Assembly (NCBI GenBank): GCA_965112735.1
Contig: OZ218965.1
Coordinates: 558,001-622,000 of the forward strand
DNA: 64,000 bases
Origin: Phaeosaccion multiseriatum
Lineage: Eukaryota > Protista > Ochrophyta, other classes
Direction of reading: 5' to 3'
In this document: positions 33,869 to 50,237 of the stretch, in pieces
Numbering within the stretch: the first letter of the stretch is position 1
Layout of the letters: each line of letters opens with the position of its first letter
The notes under the pieces: model-generated
What the model saw: only the letters and a program-made list of their open reading frames with translations
Databases searched by the model: none
What the model was told of the DNA's origin: nothing
Made by a program: the position numbers and the translations under genes

Positions 33869-33931
33869 CACCTACCTACCTACCTACCTACCTACCTACC
33901 TACCTACCTACCTACCTACCTACCTACCTAC
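33869..33931. repeat. (CCTA)n intergenic microsatellite
   Basis: Visible run between the convergent ABC1K and JmjC genes. Confidence 0.9.
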
Positions 33932-34130
33932 TTAAGTCTCATCAGACCTCATCGGATACCTAATCGAGCGTATCTAACAGCGGTATCCGTCAAAGTTCAA
34001 AGCACCTCTTCGCCTTCCGTTCCCCCAGCACCATCAAAAGTAAGACACTTCACTCCTACACCTAGCTCTCCTTATAGGCGCGAGATGCTCGGTGTTCGCC
34101 TCACTGTGCCTCACAACGCTGAGGCAGCGC

Positions 34131-37100
34131 CTAGCAGCTCGGGAATTGCGCGAAACCGCAGTAGCGGCAGTTTGTCTGAGCGATGCAGCCAAGGCCCTCG
34201 CAAGCAACTTCGACGTATGCGCATTCTTGACCGGGGGCATCGCAGCCCTCTACACCTGCACAAGACCCAACGCCTGACAGTATCACAGGTGATATGAGAG
34301 AGAAAGGTGAGTCAGTTGGAGTTGCAGGGCATGGTGGCCGTAGTAGGGCCGAGGCAGTACTCGGAGCGAGGGAGCGAAGCAAGAAAAGCAGAGTGTGTGT
34401 ATGTGGGGGGGGCGGAGAGAGAGAGAGGGAGAGAGGGAGAGGGAGAGAGCGAGAGAAAGGGGGAGCGGGGTTGAAGGGCGCCAGCCAGAGCCGAGCAAAG
34501 CACAGGAGGAGGAGGAGGAGGAGGTAGGAAGAAGACTCCGAGCAAGAGTCAGCAGAGCGAGGCCGTTGCTCTGAAGCGCACCTGATGAGACTGGACTGGG
34601 GGCCGAAGTGGTGGTCGAAGTGGGGGTCGGGGCGGTGTCTTCTCCATCACAGGCGATGGCCGAGTACACACCGAAGCCGCAGTATCTGTTGACAGATGCG
34701 CAATTTCGGGATTAGCTAGATGCGCTAGAGACACTTGAGGAGACGCCGAAACGCATCAAAGTAGAGGAGGTTAGTCGCGCGGCCGTGACATGTTTTGGCA
34801 GTCTTGTCAGCACCTGCAATTGGTGCCCGCGATGCAGCCGAGGCCCTCGCATCCGCCTTCCCCGACGTGGACGCACGACTGACCCCTTGCATCGCAGCCC
34901 GCAACCCCCACACAGGAAGAAGCGCCATCTGTGAAGTGCCACAGGAGGTGGTGCCAGACAGGCGAGGAGGGAAAGGTTCGTCGTCAGTTGCAAAGGGTAC
35001 AGCGGGGACGGATGGGTATGCGGCCCAGGCAGATCTCGGAGAGTGGGGGCGAAGTAAGACAAGCAGAGAGAAGGCAATGTGAGCCTGCAGCAGACAGAAG
35101 GATTGAGACTCGAAGCAAGAACGACGTTTGCCCTAATGCGCACCTGATGACGCTGGACTGGGGGCCGAAGTGGTGGTCGAAGTGGGGGTCGGGACAGTGT
35201 CTTCTCCATCGCAGGCGATGGCCGAGTACACACCGAAACCGCAGTACCTAGACGTACAAGACAGCGAGTGTCGGATATGCACATAGGACAAGGAGCAGAG
35301 CAAGGAAGGAAGGAAGGGAGGAGGTCGGTCCAGGATACATCCCTCTCGCCTCCTTCACTCCCTCTTACTGGCCCATCGTACCTGCAATTGGTGCCCGCGA
35401 TGCAGCCGAGGCCCTCGCATCCCCCTTCCCCGACGTAGACGCATGACTGACCGTTTGCATCGCAGCCCCCCACTCCATCACAGGAAGCGTCGCCTGCAAG
35501 AGTAAGAGGTGTGAGGCGGTTACATGTAACTGCAATAGAATGCACCCTCTTCCCTCCCTTCTCTCTCATCTCAGGAGCCCAACGGAGGAACGGAGGATGC
35601 CGGAGGGGACGCGAACCCAAGCACAAAAACCGAAAGACCCCAGGCACAGGAAATCACTCGCAGTAAGAAGCCGAGGCGAAGATGTGCGACGACACACCTG
35701 CAAGTGGCGCGGTGGTGGATGGCGTGGGTACCGGACTTGGGGTGGGAGAAATGGGCGTGGGTACCGGGCTCGGAGGAGAAGGAACGGGTGCTTCTCCGTT
35801 GATCTTGGCAAGCTCGGTGAGGACCTTTAGAGGCCGAGGAGGGGGACGGGGGCAGGAGGGGCAGCGCACGAGGTGTCGTCAACAAAATGGTAGAGGACAG
35901 AAGGAGGCACTGCCGAGCACGGGGAGAGTCCAAGGCACGGAGTGCGAGGAGATAACAAGCGCAGCACACTGTGTGTAGTCAGGCGTGGCGAGAGCGCAGG
36001 TCTGTCTCTCACCACGTCGGGGATACACTCCCTGATTCCGCAGTAGCTGGCCTCGCTCGAAAGTGTGAAGCCTGTGTGAGTGAGGAGGCACAGAGAGGAA
36101 CACAGCGAAGGGGTGGGGGCAAAGCGAGTCGAGTCATGGCAAGCGAACGAGTGGATGGAAGGAGATTAGAGGCATACGTCATAAGCAACGGCTCCATCTC
36201 TCTTTAAGGGAGATGAGAGCATCGCTCTACCGACCGTGGAGAGCGGTAGAGGGCTGAAACAAACGTAGCTCTTCCGAGAGACACAGAGACATCATTCCGC
36301 TCGCATGCGAAGTACCCGTACCTGGTTCGCACACCTCGCACCCAGCGCCGTCCACACAAAGGGCGCACCCCGTGTCGCATGCATGGCAGGGGTATGTCGC
36401 CGTGCTGCTCTCCCCCGCGGAAGGCTGGAAGAAGCCCGCGGCACACATGGAGCAGAGTCCATCCTCGCACGCCGCGCAGTTGGAGTTTGGCAGAAGCACG
36501 CTGTCGGGGGTGCACTGGCAGGGAATGCCGTCCGAAGCGCCGCAGTCCGAGGGGCAAATATTGCCCACGCGGAGCCAGCGCGCAGATGGGGCGTAGTCGA
36601 CAATGACAATCCCATTATCAGCCAAGACCTGTGCCGTCGCGCGGGGGTCGAAGAGAGCAGAGAGCTCTTGCAGAAGCACTGCGGCCAAGGACGACTCGGG
36701 CTCTCCGAGCACGATGACGACAACGGTCACGTCCACCGTCCAGGTGTTGGCTGGTGAGGCAGCTGCTTGCAAGTCGAGCGCCCCGATGGACGCCTCTATA
36801 GTGAGCCTTCCCTCCCTCACCTCGGCGGTAGTCGCGGTGATGAACCTCCTCAGTAGGAGAGACAGTTCCTCCCGCTCCGTAATGACCGAGGAGGTGAAAG
36901 TCATGAGCGCATTGAGCATGAGCTTCTCATCGTTGGCGCGCCAAATGGGATTCATGCAGCAGTCCTGCTCCTCGCGGCTGCCGAACTCCGTCACGGCGTC
37001 TGGGTAGAACTTGCTGAACACGGCATCGCAGTTGTCCATGCCGCACATGAGCAAGCCATTGCACTGCGTGGTGAGGAGGGGCGACGAGTGAGTATTGTAA

Positions 37101-40100
37101 GTCTAGCGAAGGCAGAAGGGCGGAATGGATGCAATGGCACAAGCAGCAGCAGCAGCAGTAGCAGCACTCCGTTTGAACCTTGCTTCCACGGACTCACATC
37201 GTCGTCCGCCAAGCAGGGGCCGTCGCCCTCGCCGAAGACTGCGGTGTTGGCTTGGCAATACATCATCCGCTCGCAGGAGGTGTCACCCACGGGCGCGTAA
37301 TCAGGGACCCCGGTCATGTACACCAGGCTGTAGCCTGCGTGTGCGGAGGGAGAATGGTATTAGAATGGGTGGGGTCAGTGGGTTTGCCGCTTGTTTCTCG
37401 TGTGTACGCTGCTCCCTCTTCCCTCTGCCTTTAACCCATTGATTGCTGTAACGCTTCAAGAGCAGAAGGGCTCCCACCCCTGCCTGATCTCCGGCGCGTT
37501 CTCTCTCTCACTAAATCCCTCCCTTTTCTGATGCACTGGCTGACTCACCTTCCTCGCACACTTGGCAGCCCTGACCGTCCTTACACATGTTGCACCCCTC
37601 CATCTCGCACTTGGTACAGGGGTAACCATCCGTCATCTTCCAGTAGCCAAGCGCACACTGCTCGCACACGCCGCTCTCAGCGCAAACGGCGCAGCTGTCG
37701 TCCTCAGGAGTGCAGACGCACTCGTCGCGGTCGCAAGTGTCAGGACACAAGGTGTACATCATTGAAGCATCCTCCACCTCACCACCCTCAGAGACAAAGG
37801 CGCTCCCCAGCAGCTCTTCCATGCCGCCCCCTTGTGTGCAGGCGGCCTCGAAGGTTGGGTGACCCTCTGATCCCTCTTTGAAGTACCTGTGAAGTGCCAT
37901 TGAGTTGAGGGAGGTCGCCACACAAAGTAAGCACATGCAATCCAAGGGGCGGGGGGGCGGGGGGGCGGGGGGATGGGGGGACGTCGCGTGTGAGGTATGT
38001 AAATGGGACAAAGGGAAAGGAAAGGAATGGGGAGGATTAGGAAAGGCCCTGACACGCCTCGCGCTTGACTTACTTGTCGTAGGTCATCTTGATCATGTTG
38101 AGCGTCTCTGCGTTGCTGGCGGCCGCAGTGACGTTGCTAGACGTGTTGGTATCGGGTACGAAGATAAGGCTCTCCTTGCCTCTCTCGAGTTCCCATGCGG
38201 AAGCAATAGGCTCGCCAAAGTGCTTAACCCCACGCACACTGGGGTTCTTGAGGAATGCCATCTCTTCCTCCGTCAGGGCATCCTCCAGCGCTGCAGCCAC
38301 GGCTTCGGCATCTTCCATCATGGCATCTTTGTCAGCAGCAGCACCGTCCTCATCATCGGTCTGCAGCTGTCGGCGCCTCTGTCCGATGAAATCAAGCGCC
38401 GACAACGCGCCTTGTGCGATGAAATCAAGCAACGAATCGAGATTGATGCTCGAGCTCGCGTATGTCGAGTAGCAAGTGTCCACCCCGACGCTTACCGGGA
38501 AGCCTGTGCCAGTAAAAGGAATTATGACACCTCCGCCAAGAGTGGCGCCATAGAAGGCGTAGTCACCGGTGAACTCCGCTGCGATAGTGGCTTCCAGAGG
38601 GATACCTAAGAACCCCAAATCGCCGTTAATGGAGAGAGAATGTCCCGCGCCGGGCACAACCGCGGGGAAGCGCGAGCCCGCGTTGGCGATGGCGGCCGTC
38701 ACTGTAATAGAAGTGCCGGCATCAAAGAGGTCTCCTGATGGGACGGCCGTTCCTCTACACAAGTCGAACGAGCAGAACATGTTGTCCTCGCCATTGACTA
38801 TTTCCCGCCAGACTGTCATTGAAGTTGAGAATGCGCGATCCGAGCCGCCGATTGGGAAGGCAATATCGAGTACCGCATTGACGCTCACGCTGCTCAAGCC
38901 ACCGATGGAGGAAAAAGCTTGTGTGAAGGCGAGAGAGGGCGGAAAAGCCAAGGCGCTCAATACCATGACATCACAGAGCTCCCGCAGATCCGTCGTGTCC
39001 TCCTCCATAAAAGGATCCGGCACGAAGCCTACCGTGGTGGAAAGTGGGACGAGGTTGAGGGCCGCTCTGCGGTAGTTGTCGGAGAGAGCGACAAAGTTTC
39101 TCTACGTTGTTGGTTGCCGAGAAAGAGCATCAGCCGCCGAGGCATTTGTCGCCGAAGCGGAGGGTTCAGGCCGCAGCCAGAAAGGGCACGAGAACCAAGG
39201 AAAGAGCAAGAAGGTGACAGCGTTGTTGTCAGTTCCTTCACAATCAGCCAGTCACGGGTCACGCAGCATGAACGAGGACAGGAAGGAAGTCTTCAAAGGT
39301 TCACAAGCTCTTGTGTGGGTGTCTCAGTGTTTCTCCCTTTGGCCCCTCATCCCACCAGACAGTTACGCACCTCAAGTGCGTCCGCGATGTTTTGACCTAA
39401 CTCCTCGGCTATGTCCACGACCTGGGTGATGACCTCTTCGGTCTCTTCGAAGGCTGTGATGTACGAATCCAAGTCCGTGAGTGTTCCACAGATGGAGTCA
39501 CACGTCTCTCTCAGGTCGGTGCACGTATCTCTGCATTCGTCAGCGACGTCAAAGAGAGGCACACAGATCTCGCCAAAGCATCCGTTGTAGGCGCTGTTAC
39601 AGGCGTTTTGGCAGGGAGAGCATACGTCATCACAGCCTGGCAAAAGGAGAGGGCGAGCAGTAGTAGAGAAGAGAGAGTCAAGAGCATTAGAGAAGAGAAC
39701 AGTAGGGAATACAAGAGAGGCCTTCGCTGCGGTCGGCATGTAGTGCAAGTCCTATGTGCGTACTGACTTAGGCGAGTGAGAGTGCGACGAGAGAGGGGAG
39801 GGGAAGGAGTGAGCGCTAACGGGCTGACGGACCGACTGACTCACGAAAGCAACCCAACTTACTTAAGGTGCATCCGCTATCACACGACCCGGTGCACGCG
39901 CTGTCACATGACGAGCCGAGCCCACAGCTAGAGTCACAACTGGAAATACAGCGACTGTCACAGCTTCGAACGCCCCACGAATCGCAACCTGGGGCACGGG
40001 CGCGAGGGGAACGAGTCAATGAGTCGGACGACAAGGAAGAGGCCCCTTCGAAGGAAGAGCGAGGAGAAGAAAGGAAAAGAAAAAAGGCAAGCAATACTCA

Positions 40101-41047
40101 CTTCCAAAGCAAGTTCCATCACACGAGCGGGTGCAGACTCCTCCACGATCGCAGGAGCCTATACAGCTCGAGTCGCAGCTCCTGTGGAACGGAGGAAATG
40201 GTGCGGGTGGCGGAGAAGCAAGGAGCCAGTCAGTCAGGGCTACGAAATGACAGGAGAGGACGCTGCCTGCATTACACCAGTGTACTCACGTCAAGCAGCC
40301 AGAATCGCAGCCACAAAGCCTGCATGGGGAGACGCAGACACTGCGGGCCGCGGAGCACGTGCTTTCGCAACCCTCTGCGATGAAGTCCAAACCATCGCAC
40401 CCTGTGGGAACAGCAAGAGCGAGCAAGAGAAGAGAAGAGTTGTGAGAAGGCGAGAAAGAGAAAGGGCGAACGCTGGAAGACGTGTTGATGCGTTTACAGC
40501 TGCCTCCCTACTTACCAAAGTTGCATGCGTCCAGTGCGGTGCTGCAGACCGAATTGCAAGCACCAGAAGCAAGCCTGCAACTCTCGTCGACCTTCCCTCA
40601 CCATAGCTTTGTTCTTCGTCGCAAGTCCATGCTGTATTCTACAGAACAACAAGGCAAGCAAGGCCGGAAAGAATAAGGGAGGCAAGTGAGCGCGAAAGGG
40701 GGGGTTCGGGATCAGCCGCCCCCCTCCGACGCACGAATACAGGCCAGAGCATCAACCATTCGGCTGCTGTACCACCAAGTGATCCTCCTGCTTGCGCCAG
40801 GCACCAGGCACCGCGTGTGATCACCATCCAGCAGACTTGCTCCACTCACTTGTCGTACGCAGGGTAGTCGCCCGTCTCGAGCTCCGCCTTGAGCCTCTGG
40901 AGAATGTCCTCGATCATCTTGGCATTTTCCTCGAGCTTGTCCTCGGCGGAAAATGTCCACTCGTCCACGGGATTGCGCAACGGGCACTTGGGCTGCCTGG
41001 CGTGGCGGGGCTTGTCGTCGCTGAAGCTGCCCACACTGCTGTACAGG

Positions 41048-41095
<48 letters not shown>

Positions 41096-43403
41096 CGGGA
41101 AGGGGGGGGGAGAAGCGTAGACAGAAGAAGGAACAGTCGGTGTTGTGTGAGAGAGGTGTAGCTAGTGACAAAACAACACCTGCGCTGACGAACTAACTCA
41201 ACTTCTCTCCATAACTACGTCCCTCGTCCCTCCTATGACTGCTTGCTTCACAAAGGAGAGTTTTCGTGCATGTCCCGTCGTGCCCAGCCCTGCCAGCAGC
41301 GTACCTCTGATGCTCGCTGTTGTCTCTGACTGTGTCTGCAGCAGCCGAGCAGGCACTGATGAAGGAGGAGTCGGTGCGCATAGCGGAGACGAGGGCCTTG
41401 ATCTCCATGTTCATGTCTTCCCCGTCCAAATCAAAGGGATCGCCCTTGGTCGTCATGTCCAGCGCGACGTCAAGCTTGGCCTCCATCTCGTCGATCATTG
41501 TAAGGTACGCGTTGTGCAGGGCGAGGATGCTGGCGTCTTCGCACGACGGTCCGAAACGGTGGGGCACGTCGTTCACGACCCACATGGGGAGCATCCTCCT
41601 CCAGCCGATGCCATCTAGGCTAGCTTCGACCTGTTCAGGAAGAAGGAAAGGAGGGGAGGCGGGAGGGGGAAGAGGACATTGCTTAGAGGCAATACGGCGA
41701 ACAGTTCCCAAGTGGTGTGGTGTGGTATTCCTCCCTGGCTGAGAAGACTCACCTTGGCGACGGTCTCTGCAACGACGGAGAAGGCAGGGCTCATGACGGC
41801 ATCGTCATCCTCATCCTCGTCCTGTCCAGCGGCGCCCGCTCCGCGAAGGGCTCCTCGCAGCAGATCGCTGTAGAGCAGCCCGTCGCGGATGAGGCCAATG
41901 GTAAGGTGGGTGGAGGACGGCAGCCCCTGCACGGTGGTGGCCGAGTGGATGACTCCCTTGGGGAGGTACAGCGTGTCCCCGGGAGATAGAGTGGTGTTGT
42001 GGCAGCTCAGGCTGGATCGCAGGTCGTGTGTCGTGCAGCCCTCAACGCTGTCCAGGATGGACTCGTACATCTCGCATGTCTCGGAATCGGAAAAGGTGTA
42101 GTCGGGGTACAAGGCGCGCTCCTGAAAGATGGAGGGAGGAGAGGGGAGGGAGAGACGGGAAAGAGAGGGGGGGGGCGAGCGAGTAAGGAAAGAGGCGGGG
42201 AGACATACCCAACCATGGCTGACGGCAGCATTGCAGCTTCATTGCCCTGGAGGGGGAGGCGACCAGGCCGCTCACCTGCTCGGTCTGGTGAAGGGGAGAG
42301 CAGAGCTCCCACTCCTTCTGACCATCCACCTGAAGCACCAGCACATCGTAACGATCCGTGTGGGGCTTGAGGGCGACGGCGTCAGGGCCAGAGTGGTAGA
42401 CATTGAAACTGCACGAAACAGACGACGGTGGTGTGGGCGACGGGGCGAACAAGAGGTCAGCGAGTCGGCGGATAGAGAAGAGGGGCGAAAGAGCCCACAG
42501 TCAGGCAGGGACCAGCAAAGCGGGTTGGCAAAGGGGGGAGCAGCCAGCCCTGGAGCCAAAAGGAAAATTACTACTGGCCTGATAGATACTAGACAGGGAG
42601 GTGAGAAGATTGACTTCCCCTCGACCTCTTGTAAGTATGGCAAGGAGGCAAATAAATAAGCATCACCCGCGTCTCTCGTACCTGAGTGGCACTTCGAGCT
42701 CCATTTCCAAGTCTTGATGGAAGGTCTTGGCCGTGGAGGGGAGCGTGTCTCCAGTCAAGCGGAAGACCGCCGAGCCGCCTTCGCTCACGTACTGGTCCAA
42801 GTCCTGCGCTGTGGCAGAGGCGGGGAGGGCTTCGCTACTGCCCCACTTGCGTAGAGAGATGACGTCTGTAACACCCCTCTCCTTTGCAAACTGGAACAGA
42901 CTTGGGCCGTAGAGCTCCTCCTGCATGGTCTGGAGACCGGAGCCGTGCGTGTCGCTGGAGGGGAATCGGTGGGAGCTCGACCCGAAGTGCTCGGTGAAGA
43001 AGGCTTGTGTATCTCCGACCAGCATGTGGAGGGCACCACTGTCCTTGGTGGACGAGGAAGAAACCTGTTGGCCCGGGAAGCGGCCACTTCCTTGCTCAAT
43101 CTGTGAAGTAGCAGCAAGCAAGCAAGAGCGAGGCGGAGAAAAATGGAGAGGAGCAAGTCCAAAGTAAGCAAGCGGCCGGCGCTGGTTCTCGTTGCGGAAT
43201 GTTGACTTTAACACAAAGCAAGAAGGCAGCAAGTCAAGGCGTTGGATCCCTCGCTGCACCTCGCTCACCACAGCTTTCGTCAGGTCGAAGGACAAGGGGT
43301 GGTGCAAGCCACCACCGTCACCGCCAGCACCAGCAGCTGCTGAAGCTCCGGGCAGCGCAGTCGCTCCAACAGCGGCAAGCACCGTGACGATGATGCCCGC
43401 CAT
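34131..43403 (-). CDS. Secreted JmjC/cupin-4 (NO66/RIOX-like) 2OG-Fe(II) oxygenase fused to a long Cys-rich region (xCD repeats, furin-like CxxC repeats, 3x 'GCEGLGC..CRYCGF' modules); ~20 exons; in-frame TGA at 40600-40598
   Basis: Signal peptide 'MAGIIVTVLAAVGATALPGASA'. JmjC motifs 'NVYHS..LKPHTDRYDVLVLQVDGQKEW' and 'LSPGDTLYLPKGVIHSA..STHLTIG'. Downstream exons join with matching intron phases to the stop at 34131 (checked by eye from ~41.3 kb downward). Confidence 0.7.
41049..41094. repeat. (GT)n intronic microsatellite
   Basis: Visible run next to a minus-strand acceptor. Confidence 0.9.
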
Positions 43404-44724: not shown

Positions 44725-47333
44725 CTCCCTCCCTCCCCCTCCCTCCCTCCCTCCCTCCCTCCCTCCCTCCCTCCCTCCCTCCCTCCCTCCCTCCCTCCCT
44801 CCCTCCCTCCCTCCCTCCCTCCCTCCCTCCCTCCCTCCCTCCCTCCCTCCCTCCCTCCCTCCCTCCCTCCCTCCCTCCCTCCCTCCCTCCCTCCCTCCCT
44901 CCCTCCCTCCCTCCCTCCCTCCCTCCCTCCCTCCCTCCCTCCCTCCCTCCCTCCCTCCCTCCCTCCCTCCCTCCCTCCCTCCCTCCCTCCCTCCCTCCCT
45001 CCCTCCCTCCCTCCCTCCCTCCCTCCCTCCCTCCCTCCCTCCCTCCCTCCCTCCCTCCCTCCCTCCCTCCCTCCCTCCCTCCCTCCCTCCCTCCCTCCCT
45101 CCCTCCCTCCCTCCCTCCCTCCCTCCCTCCCTCCCTCCCTCCCTCCCTCCCTCCCTCCCTCCCTCCCTCCCTCCCTCCCTCCCTCCCTCCCTCCCTCCCT
45201 CCCTCCCTCCCTCCCTCCCTCCCTCCCTCCCTCCCTCCCTCCCTCCCTCCCTCCCTCCCTCCCTCCCTCCCTCCCTCCCTCCCTCCCTCCCTCCCTCCCT
45301 CCCTCCCTCCCTCCCTCCCTCCCTCCCTCCCTCCCTCCCTCCCTCCCTCCCTCCCTCCCTCCCTCCCTCCCTCCCTCCCTCCCTCCCTCCCTCCCTCCCT
45401 CCCTCCCTCCCTCCCTCCCTCCCTCCCTCCCTCCCTCCCTCCCTCCCTCCCTCCCTCCCTCCCTCCCTCCCTCCCTCCCTCCCTCCCTCCCTCCCTCCCT
45501 CCCTCCCTCCCTCCCTCCCTCCCTCCCTCCCTCCCTCCCTCCCTCCCTCCCTCCCTCCCTCCCTCCCTCCCTCCCTCCCTCCCTCCCTCCCTCCCTCCCT
45601 CCCTCCCTCCCTCCCTCCCTCCCTCCCTCCCTCCCTCCCTCCCTCCCTCCCTCCCTCCCTCCCTCCCTCCCTCCCTCCCTCCCTCCCTCCCTCCCTCCCT
45701 CCCTCCCTCCCTCCCTCCCTCCCTCCCTCCCTCCCTCCCTCCCTCCCTCCCTCCCTCCCTCCCTCCCTCCCTCCCTCCCTCCCTCCCTCCCTCCCTCCCT
45801 CCCTCCCTCCCTCCCTCCCTCCCTCCCTCCCTCCCTCCCTCCCTCCCTCCCTCCCTCCCTCCCTCCCTCCCTCCCTCCCTCCCTCCCTCCCTCCCTCCCT
45901 CCCTCCCTCCCTCCCTCCCTCCCTCCCTCCCTCCCTCCCTCCCTCCCTCCCTCCCTCCCTCCCTCCCTCCCTCCCTCCCTCCCTCCCTCCCTCCCTCCCT
46001 CCCTCCCTCCCTCCCTCCCTCCCTCCCTCCCTCCCTCCCTCCCTCCCTCCCTCCCTCCCTCCCTCCCTCCCTCCCTCCCTCCCTCCCTCCCTCCCTCCCT
46101 CCCTCCCTCCCTCCCTCCCTCCCTCCCTCCCTCCCTCCCTCCCTCCCTCCCTCCCTCCCTCCCTCCCTCCCTCCCTCCCTCCCTCCCTCCCTCCCTCCCT
46201 CCCTCCCTCCCTCCCTCCCTCCCTCCCTCCCTCCCTCCCTCCCTCCCTCCCTCCCTCCCTCCCTCCCTCCCTCCCTCCCTCCCTCCCTCCCTCCCTCCCT
46301 CCCTCCCTCCCTCCCTCCCTCCCTCCCTCCCTCCCTCCCTCCCTCCCTCCCTCCCTCCCTCCCTCCCTCCCTCCCTCCCTCCCTCCCTCCCTCCCTCCCT
46401 CCCTCCCTCCCTCCCTCCCTCCCTCCCTCCCTCCCTCCCTCCCTCCCTCCCTCCCTCCCTCCCTCCCTCCCTCCCTCCCTCCCTCCCTCCCTCCCTCCCT
46501 CCCTCCCTCCCTCCCTCCCTCCCTCCCTCCCTCCCTCCCTCCCTCCCTCCCTCCCTCCCTCCCTCCCTCCCTCCCTCCCTCCCTCCCTCCCTCCCTCCCT
46601 CCCTCCCTCCCTCCCTCCCTCCCTCCCTCCCTCCCTCCCTCCCTCCCTCCCTCCCTCCCTCCCTCCCTCCCTCCCTCCCTCCCTCCCTCCCTCCCTCCCT
46701 CCCTCCCTCCCTCCCTCCCTCCCTCCCTCCCTCCCTCCCTCCCTCCCTCCCTCCCTCCCTCCCTCCCTCCCTCCCTCCCTCCCTCCCTCCCTCCCTCCCT
46801 CCCTCCCTCCCTCCCTCCCTCCCTCCCTCCCTCCCTCCCTCCCTCCCTCCCTCCCTCCCTCCCTCCCTCCCTCCCTCCCTCCCTCCCTCCCTCCCTCCCT
46901 CCCTCCCTCCCTCCCTCCCTCCCTCCCTCCCTCCCTCCCTCCCTCCCTCCCTCCCTCCCTCCCTCCCTCCCTCCCTCCCTCCCTCCCTCCCTCCCTCCCT
47001 CCCTCCCTCCCTCCCTCCCTCCCTCCCTCCCTCCCTCCCTCCCTCCCTCCCTCCCTCCCTCCCTCCCTCCCTCCCTCCCTCCCTCCCTCCCTCCCTCCCT
47101 CCCTCCCTCCCTCCCTCCCTCCCTCCCTCCCTCCCTCCCTCCCTCCCTCCCTTCCCTCCCTCCCTCCCTCCCTCCCTCCCTCCCTCCCTCCCTCCCTCCC
47201 TCCCTCCCTCCCTCCCTCCCTCCCTCCCTCCCTCCCTCCCTCCCTCCCTCCCGCCCTCCCTCCCTCCCTCCCTCCCTCCCTCCCTCCCTCCCTCCCTCCC
47301 TCCCTCCCTCCCTCCCTCCCTCCCTCCCTCCCT
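44725..47333. repeat. ~2.6-kb near-perfect (CCCT)n/(AGGG)n array
   Basis: Visible directly, with only a few interruptions (e.g. ~44737, ~47152, ~47253). Confidence 0.98.
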
Positions 47334-47642: not shown

Positions 47643-47893
47643 GTCTGGAGCCGACAAGTGTGTGAGAGAGTGCGTGCGTGAATGAGTAAGGGGATGAGTG
47701 GTTGTGTGCGTTGGTTGCGTGGGTGGGTGCAGGATTGGTGGGTGGGTGAGTGCTTGTATGCGCGTGTGCGTCTGAGTGTGGGCTGAGTTATGCCTGCGCT
47801 GGACTGGTAAGGCCCGGCCCTGAAGAATACGAAACTGGAACTCACAGACCTAAAAGTAAAGTGTCACTCGGCCCCACACACCACAAAGAGCCA

Positions 47894-50237
47894 ATGGGAA
47901 GCACAACGCCCACAACGGCATCAGCAGCGAAAGGCTTGGCCTCGGCACTGCTTCCCCTGCTGGTGCTGGTGCTGTCTGGTGTACGCAGCAGCAGCGCCAC
48001 GGGCAGCAGAAGCAGCGCGAGCCCCATGTCTGCCGCTTCCCGTGCTGGTGCTGCGGTGGCTGCTTCCTTGCGGCGGCACGGGTCGCGGGGCTCGCCGTCT
48101 ATGGCCTTTGTTGCTCCCTCAGGCCCGCAGCTACAGGGCAAATGGAGGCACGCATGGTCGGGCAAGGCGGAGAGAAGTAGCAGGAGGAGGAGCTTCAGCT
48201 CATCACACCACCTGCGCAAACGCCGCCAATTAGACGCTGCTAGTTCCGAGGCAGAGGCAGAGATCCCGGCCGTAGAGTCGGGTGAAGCAGCTGTCGTAAC
48301 AGCTGAGCAGGTGAAGTCGCCTTTCCTCAAGACGCTCATCTCCAGAGGCTTCTTTCACCAGTGTACTGACCTGGAGGGGCTGGACGCCAAGCTCATGAAG
48401 GGGGAGCCTGTCAAGGCATACTTGGGATTCGACGCCACCGCAGACAGTCTGCACGTCGGCAGTTTGCTGCAAATCATGATCCTCAGGCATCTACAAAAGA
48501 GCGGGAACAAACCCATCGTGCTGGTCGGAGGGGGCACCACCAAAGTGGGAGACCCGAGCGGCAAGGACGAGTCGAGGCAGATGTTGGATGACGCCGCGAT
48601 TGGCAAGAACATTGAGGGGATTGCCAGCGTATTTACCAAGTTCCTGGATTTCGGCGACGGACCAACCGATGCGCTCCTTGTCGATAACGATGATTGGCTC
48701 TCCGGGTTAGTTTTGGGCGAGTATCTGCCTTTGCTTTGCCCTGCACATGCCCACAATGCTCACTTGGCTATTACTGGGTGCCTCCACCCCCTTTGCTTGC
48801 GCGCAGGTTGGGATACATTGCATTCCTGAGGGACTACGGGCCGCTGTTCACCATCAACCGCATGCTTAGCTTTGAGTCTGTCAAGACGAGGCTGTCGAGG
48901 GAGAACCCCATGACCTTCTTGGAGTTCAACTACATGCTGCTGCAGGTCCGTCTTGCCCCCGTCCCCTGCTTGAGCTACCGCTTCTACTGCTGTTGCTGCC
49001 ACCACTCCTCCTGCTGCTGCCACTGCCAGTGCTGCTGCTTCTATCTCTGACTCTGCAAACCTGCACTGCTCAGGCCTACGACTTTGTGGAGCTGTACCGC
49101 CGGAATGAGGTATGCCTGCAGATGGGCGGGTCGGACCAGTGGGGGAACATGGTCAATGGAGTGGAGCTCGGGAGGCGCGTGGAGGGGGCCAGTCTCTTTG
49201 CGCTCACGGCCCCTCTCATTACCACCAGCGACGGAAAGAAGATGGGCAAGACAGCTGCAGGTACAGTACGCAGGGAGAGAGCACGTGCGCCTCCAGTCGC
49301 CGGGAGGGGAAGCATCCTTTGTTCACCTTCGCCGGAACAAACTCACGTCACTCTGTTTTCCTTGTGTGTACCTGTACGCAGGAGCGGTGTGGCTGAACAA
49401 GGACAAGCTGTCCGAGTACGACTACTGGCAGTTCTGGAGGAATGTGGATGACGCAGGTGGGTGTCAGCCAGCCATACTCTGGGGAGCACTCTGTCATTCT
49501 CCCCCGGCGTGTCATCTCCCCTCTCTCACCTCTCCCAACACCCCTCACCCCCCGGCCCCATAGACGTGGTGCGGTTCCTGAAGCTGTTCACAGAGGTGCC
49601 CATGGACAAGATTGAGGAGATCGCAAAGGCCAAGGGGTCGGCCCTCAACGATGCCAAGGTGCGGGTAGCGAGATCTTGGCTCTTTCTCCTCTGCGGCAGG
49701 AGAGACGCGTACACACCTTCACCCCCTCCCCTCCCTCCTCTGCTTGCAGGTGGTCCTGGCTGACGAGGCCACGCGGCTGCTGCATGGCGAGGCCTGCCTG
49801 AAGAACATTCACGAGACAGTCGCCCAGGTAAGAGGGGGAGGGGGAGGGTGGCCATTCGCACGCTAAAGTAGCGTCGTACACCCAGAAAGGAGCAGCAGAA
49901 AGGGGCAGGTCTCTGAGCAGCGCACCCCTCTCCACGCACGCAGATCTTCTCCGGCAAGGGCGGCGGCTCCTCCGCTGCTCTCCCGCGAATCGTCATCCCC
50001 AGCAGCAGAGTGGAGGGCGAGGGGGCGTCCGTGGTGGACTTTTATGTAGAGCTGGAGCTTGCCACCAGCAAGGGGGAGGTGCGGAGGCTCATCAAGGGAG
50101 GGGGCGCCAAGCTCAACGACGAGAAGATTGTGGACGACAAGGTGGTGCTCACGGAGGGCGACTTTTCGTCCGAAGGGGAGGTGAAGCTTTCTTTCGGCAA
50201 GAAGAAGCACGGCATTGTTCAGCTGCAGCAGGACTGA
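47894..50237 (+). CDS. tyrS: Bacterial-type (organellar) tyrosyl-tRNA synthetase
   Basis: '[15 protein letters not shown]' (HIGH), 'GDPSGK', 'EFNYMLLQ|AYDF', '[10 protein letters not shown]', 'KMGKT' (KMSKS), C-terminal S4-like '[20 protein letters not shown]'. N-terminal hydrophobic + Ser/Arg-rich targeting extension. Confidence 0.96.

Follow-up and report, generated by a model that had tools for sequence, protein, structure and literature searches.

FIH, an oxygenase of the JmjC type, hydroxylates Asn, Asp and His, and Asp and Asn are also beta-hydroxylated by AspH. Enzymes that modify a segment of their own chain are also known: for the plant BURP-domain cyclases and the fungal borosin OphMA, self-modification has been demonstrated, with the catalytic domain and the modified segment in one polypeptide, and the propeptide of von Willebrand factor is an oxidoreductase-like pro-domain that acts in cis and is then cut at a furin site. 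JmjC oxygenases of the ROX group have been studied as nuclear and ribosomal regulators. Human JMJD8 is a JmjC protein resident in the endoplasmic reticulum (ER) (PMC5684140); thus, a JmjC protein of the secretory pathway is not without precedent. Here we describe a gene of the alga Phaeosaccion multiseriatum in which the ROX core is predicted to enter the secretory pathway, beside an Asp/Asn repeat. The window, that is, the whole stretch of 64,000 nucleotides (nt) analyzed, corresponds to positions 558001-622000 of contig 16 (GenBank: OZ218965.1) of the 67-Mb, 22-contig assembly GCA_965112735.1, which the genome searches covered; its composition and its GT-AG introns are of the eukaryotic nuclear genome type. 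Positions 43403-34131 of the window (minus strand) very probably encode one secreted multidomain precursor, in which a JmjC oxygenase and an array of x-Cys-Asp (xCD) motifs stand in a single polypeptide.

The exon-by-exon phase check of the minus strand gave 22 exons, from the ATG at 43403 to the TAG at 34133-34131. All introns of this model are GT-AG and 108-308 nt long, the 21 junctions are all phase-consistent, and internal stops are absent; their combined length is 5,232 nt in exons, which gives 1,743 codons and a stop codon, corresponding to a protein of about 1,743 residues (1,753 residues if a candidate mini-exon, see below, is included). The splicing of the 22-exon gene is what we infer from the genomic DNA, and the junction behind exon 6 joins the JmjC part to the Cys-rich part. 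This exon ends with ...AYD, and the TGA of its frame (40849-40847) sits inside the consensus donor GACAA/GTGAGT (slashes denote splice points); the splice from 40850 to the acceptor TTGCAG/G at 40574, 275 nt further down, leads into the frame of the Cys-rich part. In exons 6 and 12 alike, the last residues are ...Y-D-K, with a stop (TGA and TAA, respectively) embedded in the consensus donor AA/GT[GA]AGT (40847-40854 and 38070-38078), so that gene callers based on open reading frames (ORFs) would truncate the protein at these points. Two near-identical paralogues on contig 1, which are inverted and about 60 kb apart (about 3,085,500-3,104,500 on the plus strand and 3,013,000-3,032,000 on the minus strand; loci L006-L009), have the same stop-within-donor arrangement (TC/GTGAGT), with the in-frame acceptor 174 nt further on. 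No convincing ATG with a leader for a separate downstream gene was found in any frame of 40850-40400, and only 275 nt separate the JmjC part from the Cys-rich part. The one-gene reading is based on these four points: the splice across the stop within the donor, the construction of the paralogues, the lack of a downstream start with a leader, and the short gap. The features of the gene are as follows (positions of the window).

43269-43403, minus strand: exon 1, start codon and hydrophobic leader, likely signal peptide (mean Kyte-Doolittle value 1.89; donor gtgagc)
42682-43100, minus strand: exon 2, N-terminal part of the oxygenase domain (tblastn match to the paralogue exon; aligns with the N-terminal region of P0001 and with other relatives, see below)
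42276-42408, minus strand: exon 3, JmjC core with the first iron ligands and the 2-oxoglutarate (2OG)-binding Lys (Pfam JmjC_2, E = 2.4e-9, 37.3 bits)
41753-42121, minus strand: exon 4, JmjC core with the second iron-ligand His, conserved Cys and an N-x-T sequon (JmjC_2, E = 8.8e-7, 28.9 bits)
40850-41630, minus strand: exons 5 (41630-41305) and 6 (41047-40850), helical region after the JmjC core (the GIGWRR motif of exon 5 matches the paralogue)
40575-40631, minus strand: ambiguous junction with the candidate mini-exon (40631-40602), a TGA (40600-40598) and a 27-nt segment (40601-40575), judged by phase and paralogue likeness
39371-40574, minus strand: exons 7-11 (40574-40516, 40401-40290, 40181-40102, 39988-39863 and 39636-39371), xCD module, then a short helical acidic segment
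38074-39101, minus strand: exon 12, orphan domain of 342 residues with QRRRQLQ near its end and an acidic tail; ends with ...TYD
36013-37886, minus strand: exons 13-16 (37886-37549, 37334-37198, 37063-36322 and 36071-36013), two CxxC-rich blocks flanking an orphan region
34131-35824, minus strand: exons 17-22, Pro/Thr/Ser linker and three CRYCGF modules, stop codon TAG at 34133-34131
35698-35824, minus strand: Pro/Thr/Ser linker, in the region of exons 17-22
35493-35382 and 35247-35144, minus strand: CRYCGF module 1, about 45 residues, Cys-rich
34928-34814 and 34685-34582, minus strand: CRYCGF module 2, about 45 residues, Cys-rich
34273-34131, minus strand: CRYCGF module 3, about 45 residues, Cys-rich

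The fusion does not depend on this locus. An exhaustive profile search with the 123-residue JmjC exon (exon 4) detected 162 relatives, many of which are long, with the match at about residues 200-300, and their JmjC_2 scores are 35-64 bits. Their common plan is a leader, the JmjC domain, a helical region, usually the basic motif RX[KR]R, tandem (C-[D/N/T]-x-x)n repeats, and a variable cargo; all complete relatives start with a hydrophobic leader. Two of them, P0001 (663 residues) and P0019 (1,212 residues), are single uninterrupted ORFs of genomic contigs that contain both JmjC and xCD, and the JmjC-xCD fusion is therefore independent of any splice model. The order leader-JmjC-xCD-cargo was also found in complete transcriptome ORFs from Salpingoeca infusionum, Hartaetosiga balthica, Choanoeca flexa and the amoebozoan Sexangularia, and in gene models from Monosiga brevicollis (five) and Salpingoeca rosetta (one). 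A catalytic domain and a repeated candidate substrate thus stand in one polypeptide in P0001, in P0019, in the transcriptome ORFs, and in the phase-consistent model presented here. The linkage was counted in the relatives that continue for 330 residues or more beyond the second His of the JmjC domain; of these 30, 14 have at least four repeat units directly after JmjC, and at least nine of the 14, all full-length, carry a basic RX[KR]R 12-35 residues ahead of their first tandem repeat. Among the cargo domains of the relatives are Sushi, HYR and Ephrin_rec_like, with a membrane span behind them. P0063 has a membrane span and a tyrosine kinase, the tail of P0052 (Monosiga) reads SH2-like (by reading only), and P0053 is a minimal form that consists of JmjC, RSRR, about 70 residues of xCD, a membrane span and a tail.

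The contig-1 paralogues of P. multiseriatum share 54-55% identity with this gene across the JmjC core exon, and their JmjC and xCD exons align to those of this gene one by one and in the same order (tblastn); they contain JmjC, RSRRR and xCD, and then a different cargo including a PKD-like stretch (by eye). Five further JmjC_2 loci were found in the assembly (C4:2661245-2661607, C6:2403624-2403842, C8:2309748-2309963, C6:876227-876379 and C15:1262545-1262703). Taken together, the sequences strongly support a family, in choanoflagellates, an amoebozoan and this alga, of extracellular or type-I membrane proteins that have a secretory-pathway JmjC domain at the N-terminus. Public databases have listed members of the family for years, with automatically assigned names; the UniRef name of the five M. 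brevicollis proteins, 'Ribosomal oxygenase 2', is probably misleading for the family, because the predicted location is secretory.

An initial annotation of this stretch, made from its letters alone, had proposed phase-compatible exons within the same limits, a signal peptide, a JmjC core with intact iron ligands (H-T-D...H), about 12 xCD motifs, a second polybasic site and three CRYCGF modules, all in one polypeptide, and had suggested a search for leader-JmjC-RR-(xCDxxC)n with variable C-terminal cargo in other organisms. These proposals agree with the model above, with the single-ORF relatives and with the details given below, and the arrangement recurs in the choanoflagellate and amoebozoan relatives as well as in the paralogues; other parts of that annotation had to be modified, as noted where they arise.

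Behind the ATG at 43403, residues 1-19 have a mean Kyte-Doolittle hydrophobicity of 1.89. Neither a convincing membrane span nor a hydrophobic C-terminal tail was found in the exons after the first, and the product is therefore predicted to be soluble and secreted. The two core exons, 3 and 4, match Pfam JmjC_2 (PF08007) with 37.3 and 28.9 bits, above the cut-off of 22 bits; the scores for Cupin_8 are below the Pfam cut-off, and no match to the AspH family (Asp_Arg_Hydrox) was detected in the exons of this gene or in the relatives scanned. The iron ligands are the His at 42362-42360 and the Asp at 42356-42354 (H-T-D), together with the second His at 41947-41945. The 2OG-binding Lys (42317-42315) lies in a G-x-K-x-W motif and aligns with the lysine of GEKHW in MINA53 in a PDB sequence search. 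In the alignment of the family (A2), residues P, D, K, W and C of the exon 3 stretch are at least 90% conserved, as is the second His; the column of the ligand His is split by the alignment, and H-x-D can be read in all sequences but one, which is N-truncated. The JmjC domain of the family has three conserved Cys and a recurrent N-x-[ST] sequon, which in this gene is the N-x-T of exon 4 at 41998-41990; these features fit a life in the secretory pathway.

Structure was modelled for P0001, the closest relative (48% identical over the query exon), and the description of the fold refers to this protein. With an alignment of 45 sequences, its double-stranded beta-helix core was predicted with a predicted local distance difference test (pLDDT) value above 90; the helical region after the core had a pLDDT of about 80, and core and helical region together match NO66 and MINA53. 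A Foldseek search with the model listed NO66 (E = 3e-13), MINA53, YxbC, YcfD and then FIH, and the PDB sequence search agrees. From the JmjC_2 matches, the catalytic positions, the fold of P0001 and the PDB search, exons 3-4 are assigned to a ROX-type JmjC oxygenase with an intact active site, and this oxygenase is probably active.

The xCD module (exons 7-11, 40574-39371) contains 36 Cys and 12 C-D dipeptides, a number that was reached by 1 of 20,000 within-exon shuffles, and of the 22 Cys-Cys intervals, 14 have a spacing of exactly 4. The ladder is interrupted by a core that is conserved in most members, including this gene, and consists of C-D, two aromatic or large hydrophobic residues, three variable residues and C-D-S-x-C. 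The core of this gene, CDSWGVRSCDSRC...SCDSSC, matches the equivalent cores in P0019, P0001, P0061, P0074 and P0167; the module is therefore better regarded as a domain than as loose low-complexity sequence. The initial annotation described the repeats as Cys-Asp, which holds for the 12 C-D of this gene; across the family the position after Cys is broader, since in 237 repeat units, taken from regions defined by Cys spacing alone, the residue after Cys was D in 59% and N in 21%, together 80%, followed by T (9%) and S (2%). A genome search with the 41-residue xCD exon found no paralogue, yet tblastn aligns the xCD exons with the contig-1 paralogue. Only three proteins were found with residues 455-595 of P0019 as the query, too few to gauge the xCD-JmjC linkage from the xCD side.

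We propose that the JmjC domain is an enzymatic pro-domain at the front of a secreted precursor. On its way through the ER, which offers O2, Fe(II), 2OG and ascorbate and in which the other 2OG oxygenases of the secretory pathway are active too, it would hydroxylate the xCD module next to it, either in its own chain or within an oligomer, with the beta-carbon of the Asp or Asn after each Cys as the likeliest target; afterwards, the JmjC domain would be cut from the mature part at a basic site in the late secretory pathway. The whole, one secreted precursor with a self-modifying JmjC pro-domain, appears to us the best explanation of the observations, and we judge its chances of being right and wrong to be about equal. 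That the JmjC domain modifies its own xCD module is a tentative conclusion, nearly as probable as its opposite. As to the chemistry, the preference for D or N after Cys points, by analogy with FIH and the unrelated AspH, to beta-hydroxylation of Asp/Asn. A wider form of the proposal seems doubtful to us, namely that self-hydroxylating secreted precursors exist in several supergroups, in which JmjC would install a ladder of beta-hydroxy-Asp/Asn, forming a Ca/metal-binding or adhesive tip, before its removal by furin/kexin.

A number of observations weigh against the proposal, and several of them concern the basic site. The motif LRRRTK (40624-40607), which the initial annotation took as the site of removal, is present in the DNA, inside the 30-nt candidate mini-exon (40631-40602) encoding MDLRRRTKL. 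This mini-exon is in phase with the donor of exon 6 only through the acceptor aatacag/C; the more obvious acceptor, ctgtag/A, is out of phase and was rejected. An in-frame TGA (40600-40598) directly follows the mini-exon and is confirmed by DNA contigs from four sequencing runs (one sample). A 27-nt GTGAG...TGCAG segment (40601-40575) would remove the TGA; it is far below the length of the other introns, about one quarter as long as the shortest of them, and we rejected it as a safe intron call. The mini-exon resembles the start of a paralogue exon, MVQRSRRRLS, and the junction QRRRRLSSSC in P0167, and thus looks like genuine or formerly genuine coding sequence. In our reading, an ancestral exon would have run from 40631 to 40516, and a nonsense change would then have arisen in it; today's mRNA most likely joins 40850 straight to 40574 and loses the basic site, in which case the enzyme would stay attached in this gene. 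Whether LRRRTK is present in the mRNA of this gene is thus uncertain: the mini-exon may be in use, splicing may be alternative, or the gene may have been truncated very recently. The furin/kexin motif RX[KR]R occurs in the relatives, in the contig-1 paralogues (RSRRR) and in P0167 (RRRR), and in this gene it is reachable only via the mini-exon. P0019 likewise has no clear polybasic site, and a member lacking the site would thus be within the range of the family. The second polybasic site, QRRRQLQ, lies in exon 12 (RRR at 38378-38370).

Other points on the same side concern the linkage, the substrate and the transcript. P0168 (726 residues, from a Logan assembly) has a leader and then xCD with the C-D-Y-W...C-D-S-S-C core and no JmjC, so that the xCD module can exist without the enzyme in cis. 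In a sister subfamily, comprising P0005 (a cluster of 23 members), P0007, P0017 and P0004, a secretory-type JmjC and helical region are followed by a different Cys-rich tail, the domain of which is present twice in P0017. The initial annotation would have been contradicted by homologous JmjC domains that are not linked to xCD repeats; JmjC without xCD is indeed found in the P0005/P0017 subfamily, whereas the two are linked in the 14 of 30 relatives mentioned above. The cis linkage is therefore frequent, not obligatory. The known substrates of ROX enzymes are His or Arg of ribosomal proteins, not Asp/Asn, and the consensus of AspH substrates differs from the xCD unit, C-[DN]-x-x-C, in which the Cys are spaced by 4. 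In the AlphaFold model of P0001, the xCD module has a pLDDT of about 30, and neither its fold nor its docking can be read from it; the complex prediction for JmjC plus the helical region of P0001 against its own xCD segment gave a score of 0.00, which speaks neither for nor against binding. Finally, the search for sequencing runs yielded just four, from one sample and all of genomic DNA (they contain the stretch with its introns), and RNA runs were not found. The contigs from these runs show zero differences from the window, a comparison that covers DNA only and carries no splicing information.

Several of these points would suit an alternative that we consider unlikely, in which the fusion is real and JmjC acts in trans on other secretory or cell-surface proteins, the xCD module being a neighbouring disulfide-rich or metal/Ca-binding stalk. 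The xCD module without JmjC in P0168, the JmjC domain with a different Cys-rich tail in P0005 and P0017, the His or Arg substrates of known ROX enzymes, and the lack of a predicted docking of xCD onto the enzyme (xCD pLDDT of about 30, complex score of 0.00) are in line with it. However, xCD stands directly after JmjC in those 14 of 30 relatives, from choanoflagellates to the amoebozoan to this alga, the extracellular part of P0053 consists of JmjC and xCD only, and the short stay of a transiting pro-domain in the ER speaks for a substrate in cis. Less probable still is that the JmjC ectodomain is a sensor (of O2, 2OG or metal) or a non-catalytic folding or oligomerization domain of surface receptors and adhesins. 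The receptor-like layout with a membrane span and a tyrosine kinase in P0063 and the SH2-like tail (by reading) of P0052 suggest such a role, and cleaved subunits of many receptors are generally known to stay associated; however, the conservation of every catalytic residue across very distant lineages argues for catalysis, this gene and proteins of the P0001 type have no membrane anchor or signalling domain, and Fe(II) and 2OG are scarce outside the cell. Finally, it is very improbable that the fusion is broken at this locus, with translation ending at the TGA at 40600-40598 or at 40849-40847, JmjC secreted as a free protein and the Cys-rich exons being either a separate gene or a very young pseudogene. 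For it speak the in-frame TGA, which the DNA contigs confirm, the apparent homology of the mini-exon to coding sequence of the paralogues and P0167, by which the ancestral exon probably ran through the point of the TGA, and the run search, which yielded DNA runs only. Against it, the 16 exons downstream, with about 4.4 kb of coding sequence, are free of stops and frameshifts and have all splice sites intact; the TGA can be avoided by splicing in phase from 40850 to 40574; no start codon with a leader of its own was found for the downstream part; and the two parts are only 275 nt apart.

The part of the precursor behind the xCD module, that is, the cargo of this gene, consists of exons 12-22. 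No exon after the JmjC domain had a Pfam match (E <= 0.1 for the CxxC exons). The orphan domain of exon 12 had no paralogue in the genome search, its Atlas feature neighbours were at chance level only (0.78), and in a BLASTP comparison with P0019 it was not significant apart from an RRRxLxTD motif. Exons 13-16 contain 39 Cys; the initial annotation called these CxxC repeats furin-like, of which the CxxC-rich blocks are confirmed, with no furin-like or related Pfam match at E <= 0.1. The three CRYCGF modules (35493-35144, 34928-34582 and 34273-34131) are parted by linkers rich in T, S and P.

Simple repeats are found in and around the gene. At the 3' end of intron 5 there is a (CA)n run (41048-41103), at which the short-read contigs break, and intron 12 contains a C/G-rich homopolymer patch (37946-37980), at which the read depth spikes. 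About 1.3 kb upstream of the start codon lies a perfect (CTCC) x 652 microsatellite (44725-47333, 2.6 kb, 99% matches), which explains the GC skew of the window (-0.68). About 200 nt downstream of the stop codon (minus strand), a (GGTA)n microsatellite is followed by (TA)n (about 33890-33960). The neighbouring ORF at 47750-48829 (plus strand), read by eye only, appears to encode a leader or transit peptide and then the N-terminus of a class-I aminoacyl-tRNA synthetase of the tyrosyl type.

We regard the compartment, the architecture and the candidate substrate as new, and the catalytic fold as known. In the searchable full-text literature (most subscription journals lie outside it), no description of a secreted ROX-type JmjC protein, of the xCD module, or of their fusion was found, in accordance with the initial annotation, whose author knew of no such architecture. 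A phylogenetic study of RIOX1/RIOX2 contains no mention of the terms signal peptide, transmembrane, secreted, extracellular, protist or choanoflagellate (PMC6006756). If the proposal is true, the family would represent a second, AspH-independent eukaryotic route to Asp/Asn hydroxylation in disulfide-rich extracellular modules, the first JmjC enzyme with a substrate of the extracellular-matrix type, and a protein-scale case of an enzyme fused to its own substrate. The choanoflagellate members matter in this respect, as choanoflagellates are used to study the origin of animal cell-surface proteins.

Among the known systems, the ROX enzymes (NO66/RIOX1, MINA53/RIOX2 and YcfD/RoxA) are the best matches in sequence and fold, sharing H-x-D...H, the Lys of G-x-K-x-W and the helical region. 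However, the ROX enzymes are nuclear, cytosolic or bacterial and stand alone, whereas the present protein has a leader, conserved Cys and a sequon and forms the N-terminus of a Cys-rich secreted precursor; it is related to ROX by its fold, but its predicted location and context are not those of a ribosomal oxygenase. FIH shares the JmjC fold, with a weaker structural match, and provides the precedent for a JmjC enzyme that hydroxylates Asn/Asp, but it is cytosolic, is of the Cupin_8 type, and acts in trans on HIF and ankyrin repeats. AspH, a 2OG oxygenase of the ER lumen, modifies Asp/Asn in disulfide-rich repeats, just as we propose for the JmjC domain; AspH is, however, a membrane enzyme in its own right with an unrelated catalytic domain, and its substrates are EGF domains with C-x-[DN]-x4-[FY]-x-C. 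In JMJD8, as proposed here, a JmjC domain stands behind a signal peptide and resides in the ER, so that the location in the cytosol or nucleus, which the initial annotation gave for NO66-type enzymes, does not extend to all JmjC proteins; JMJD8 is, however, a small JmjC-only protein of an FIH-like branch, with no repeats or cargo and no agreed activity. The BURP-domain cyclases, the borosins and von Willebrand factor share their layout with this gene and have no sequence relationship to it; their chemistry is different, and self-modification is here only proposed.

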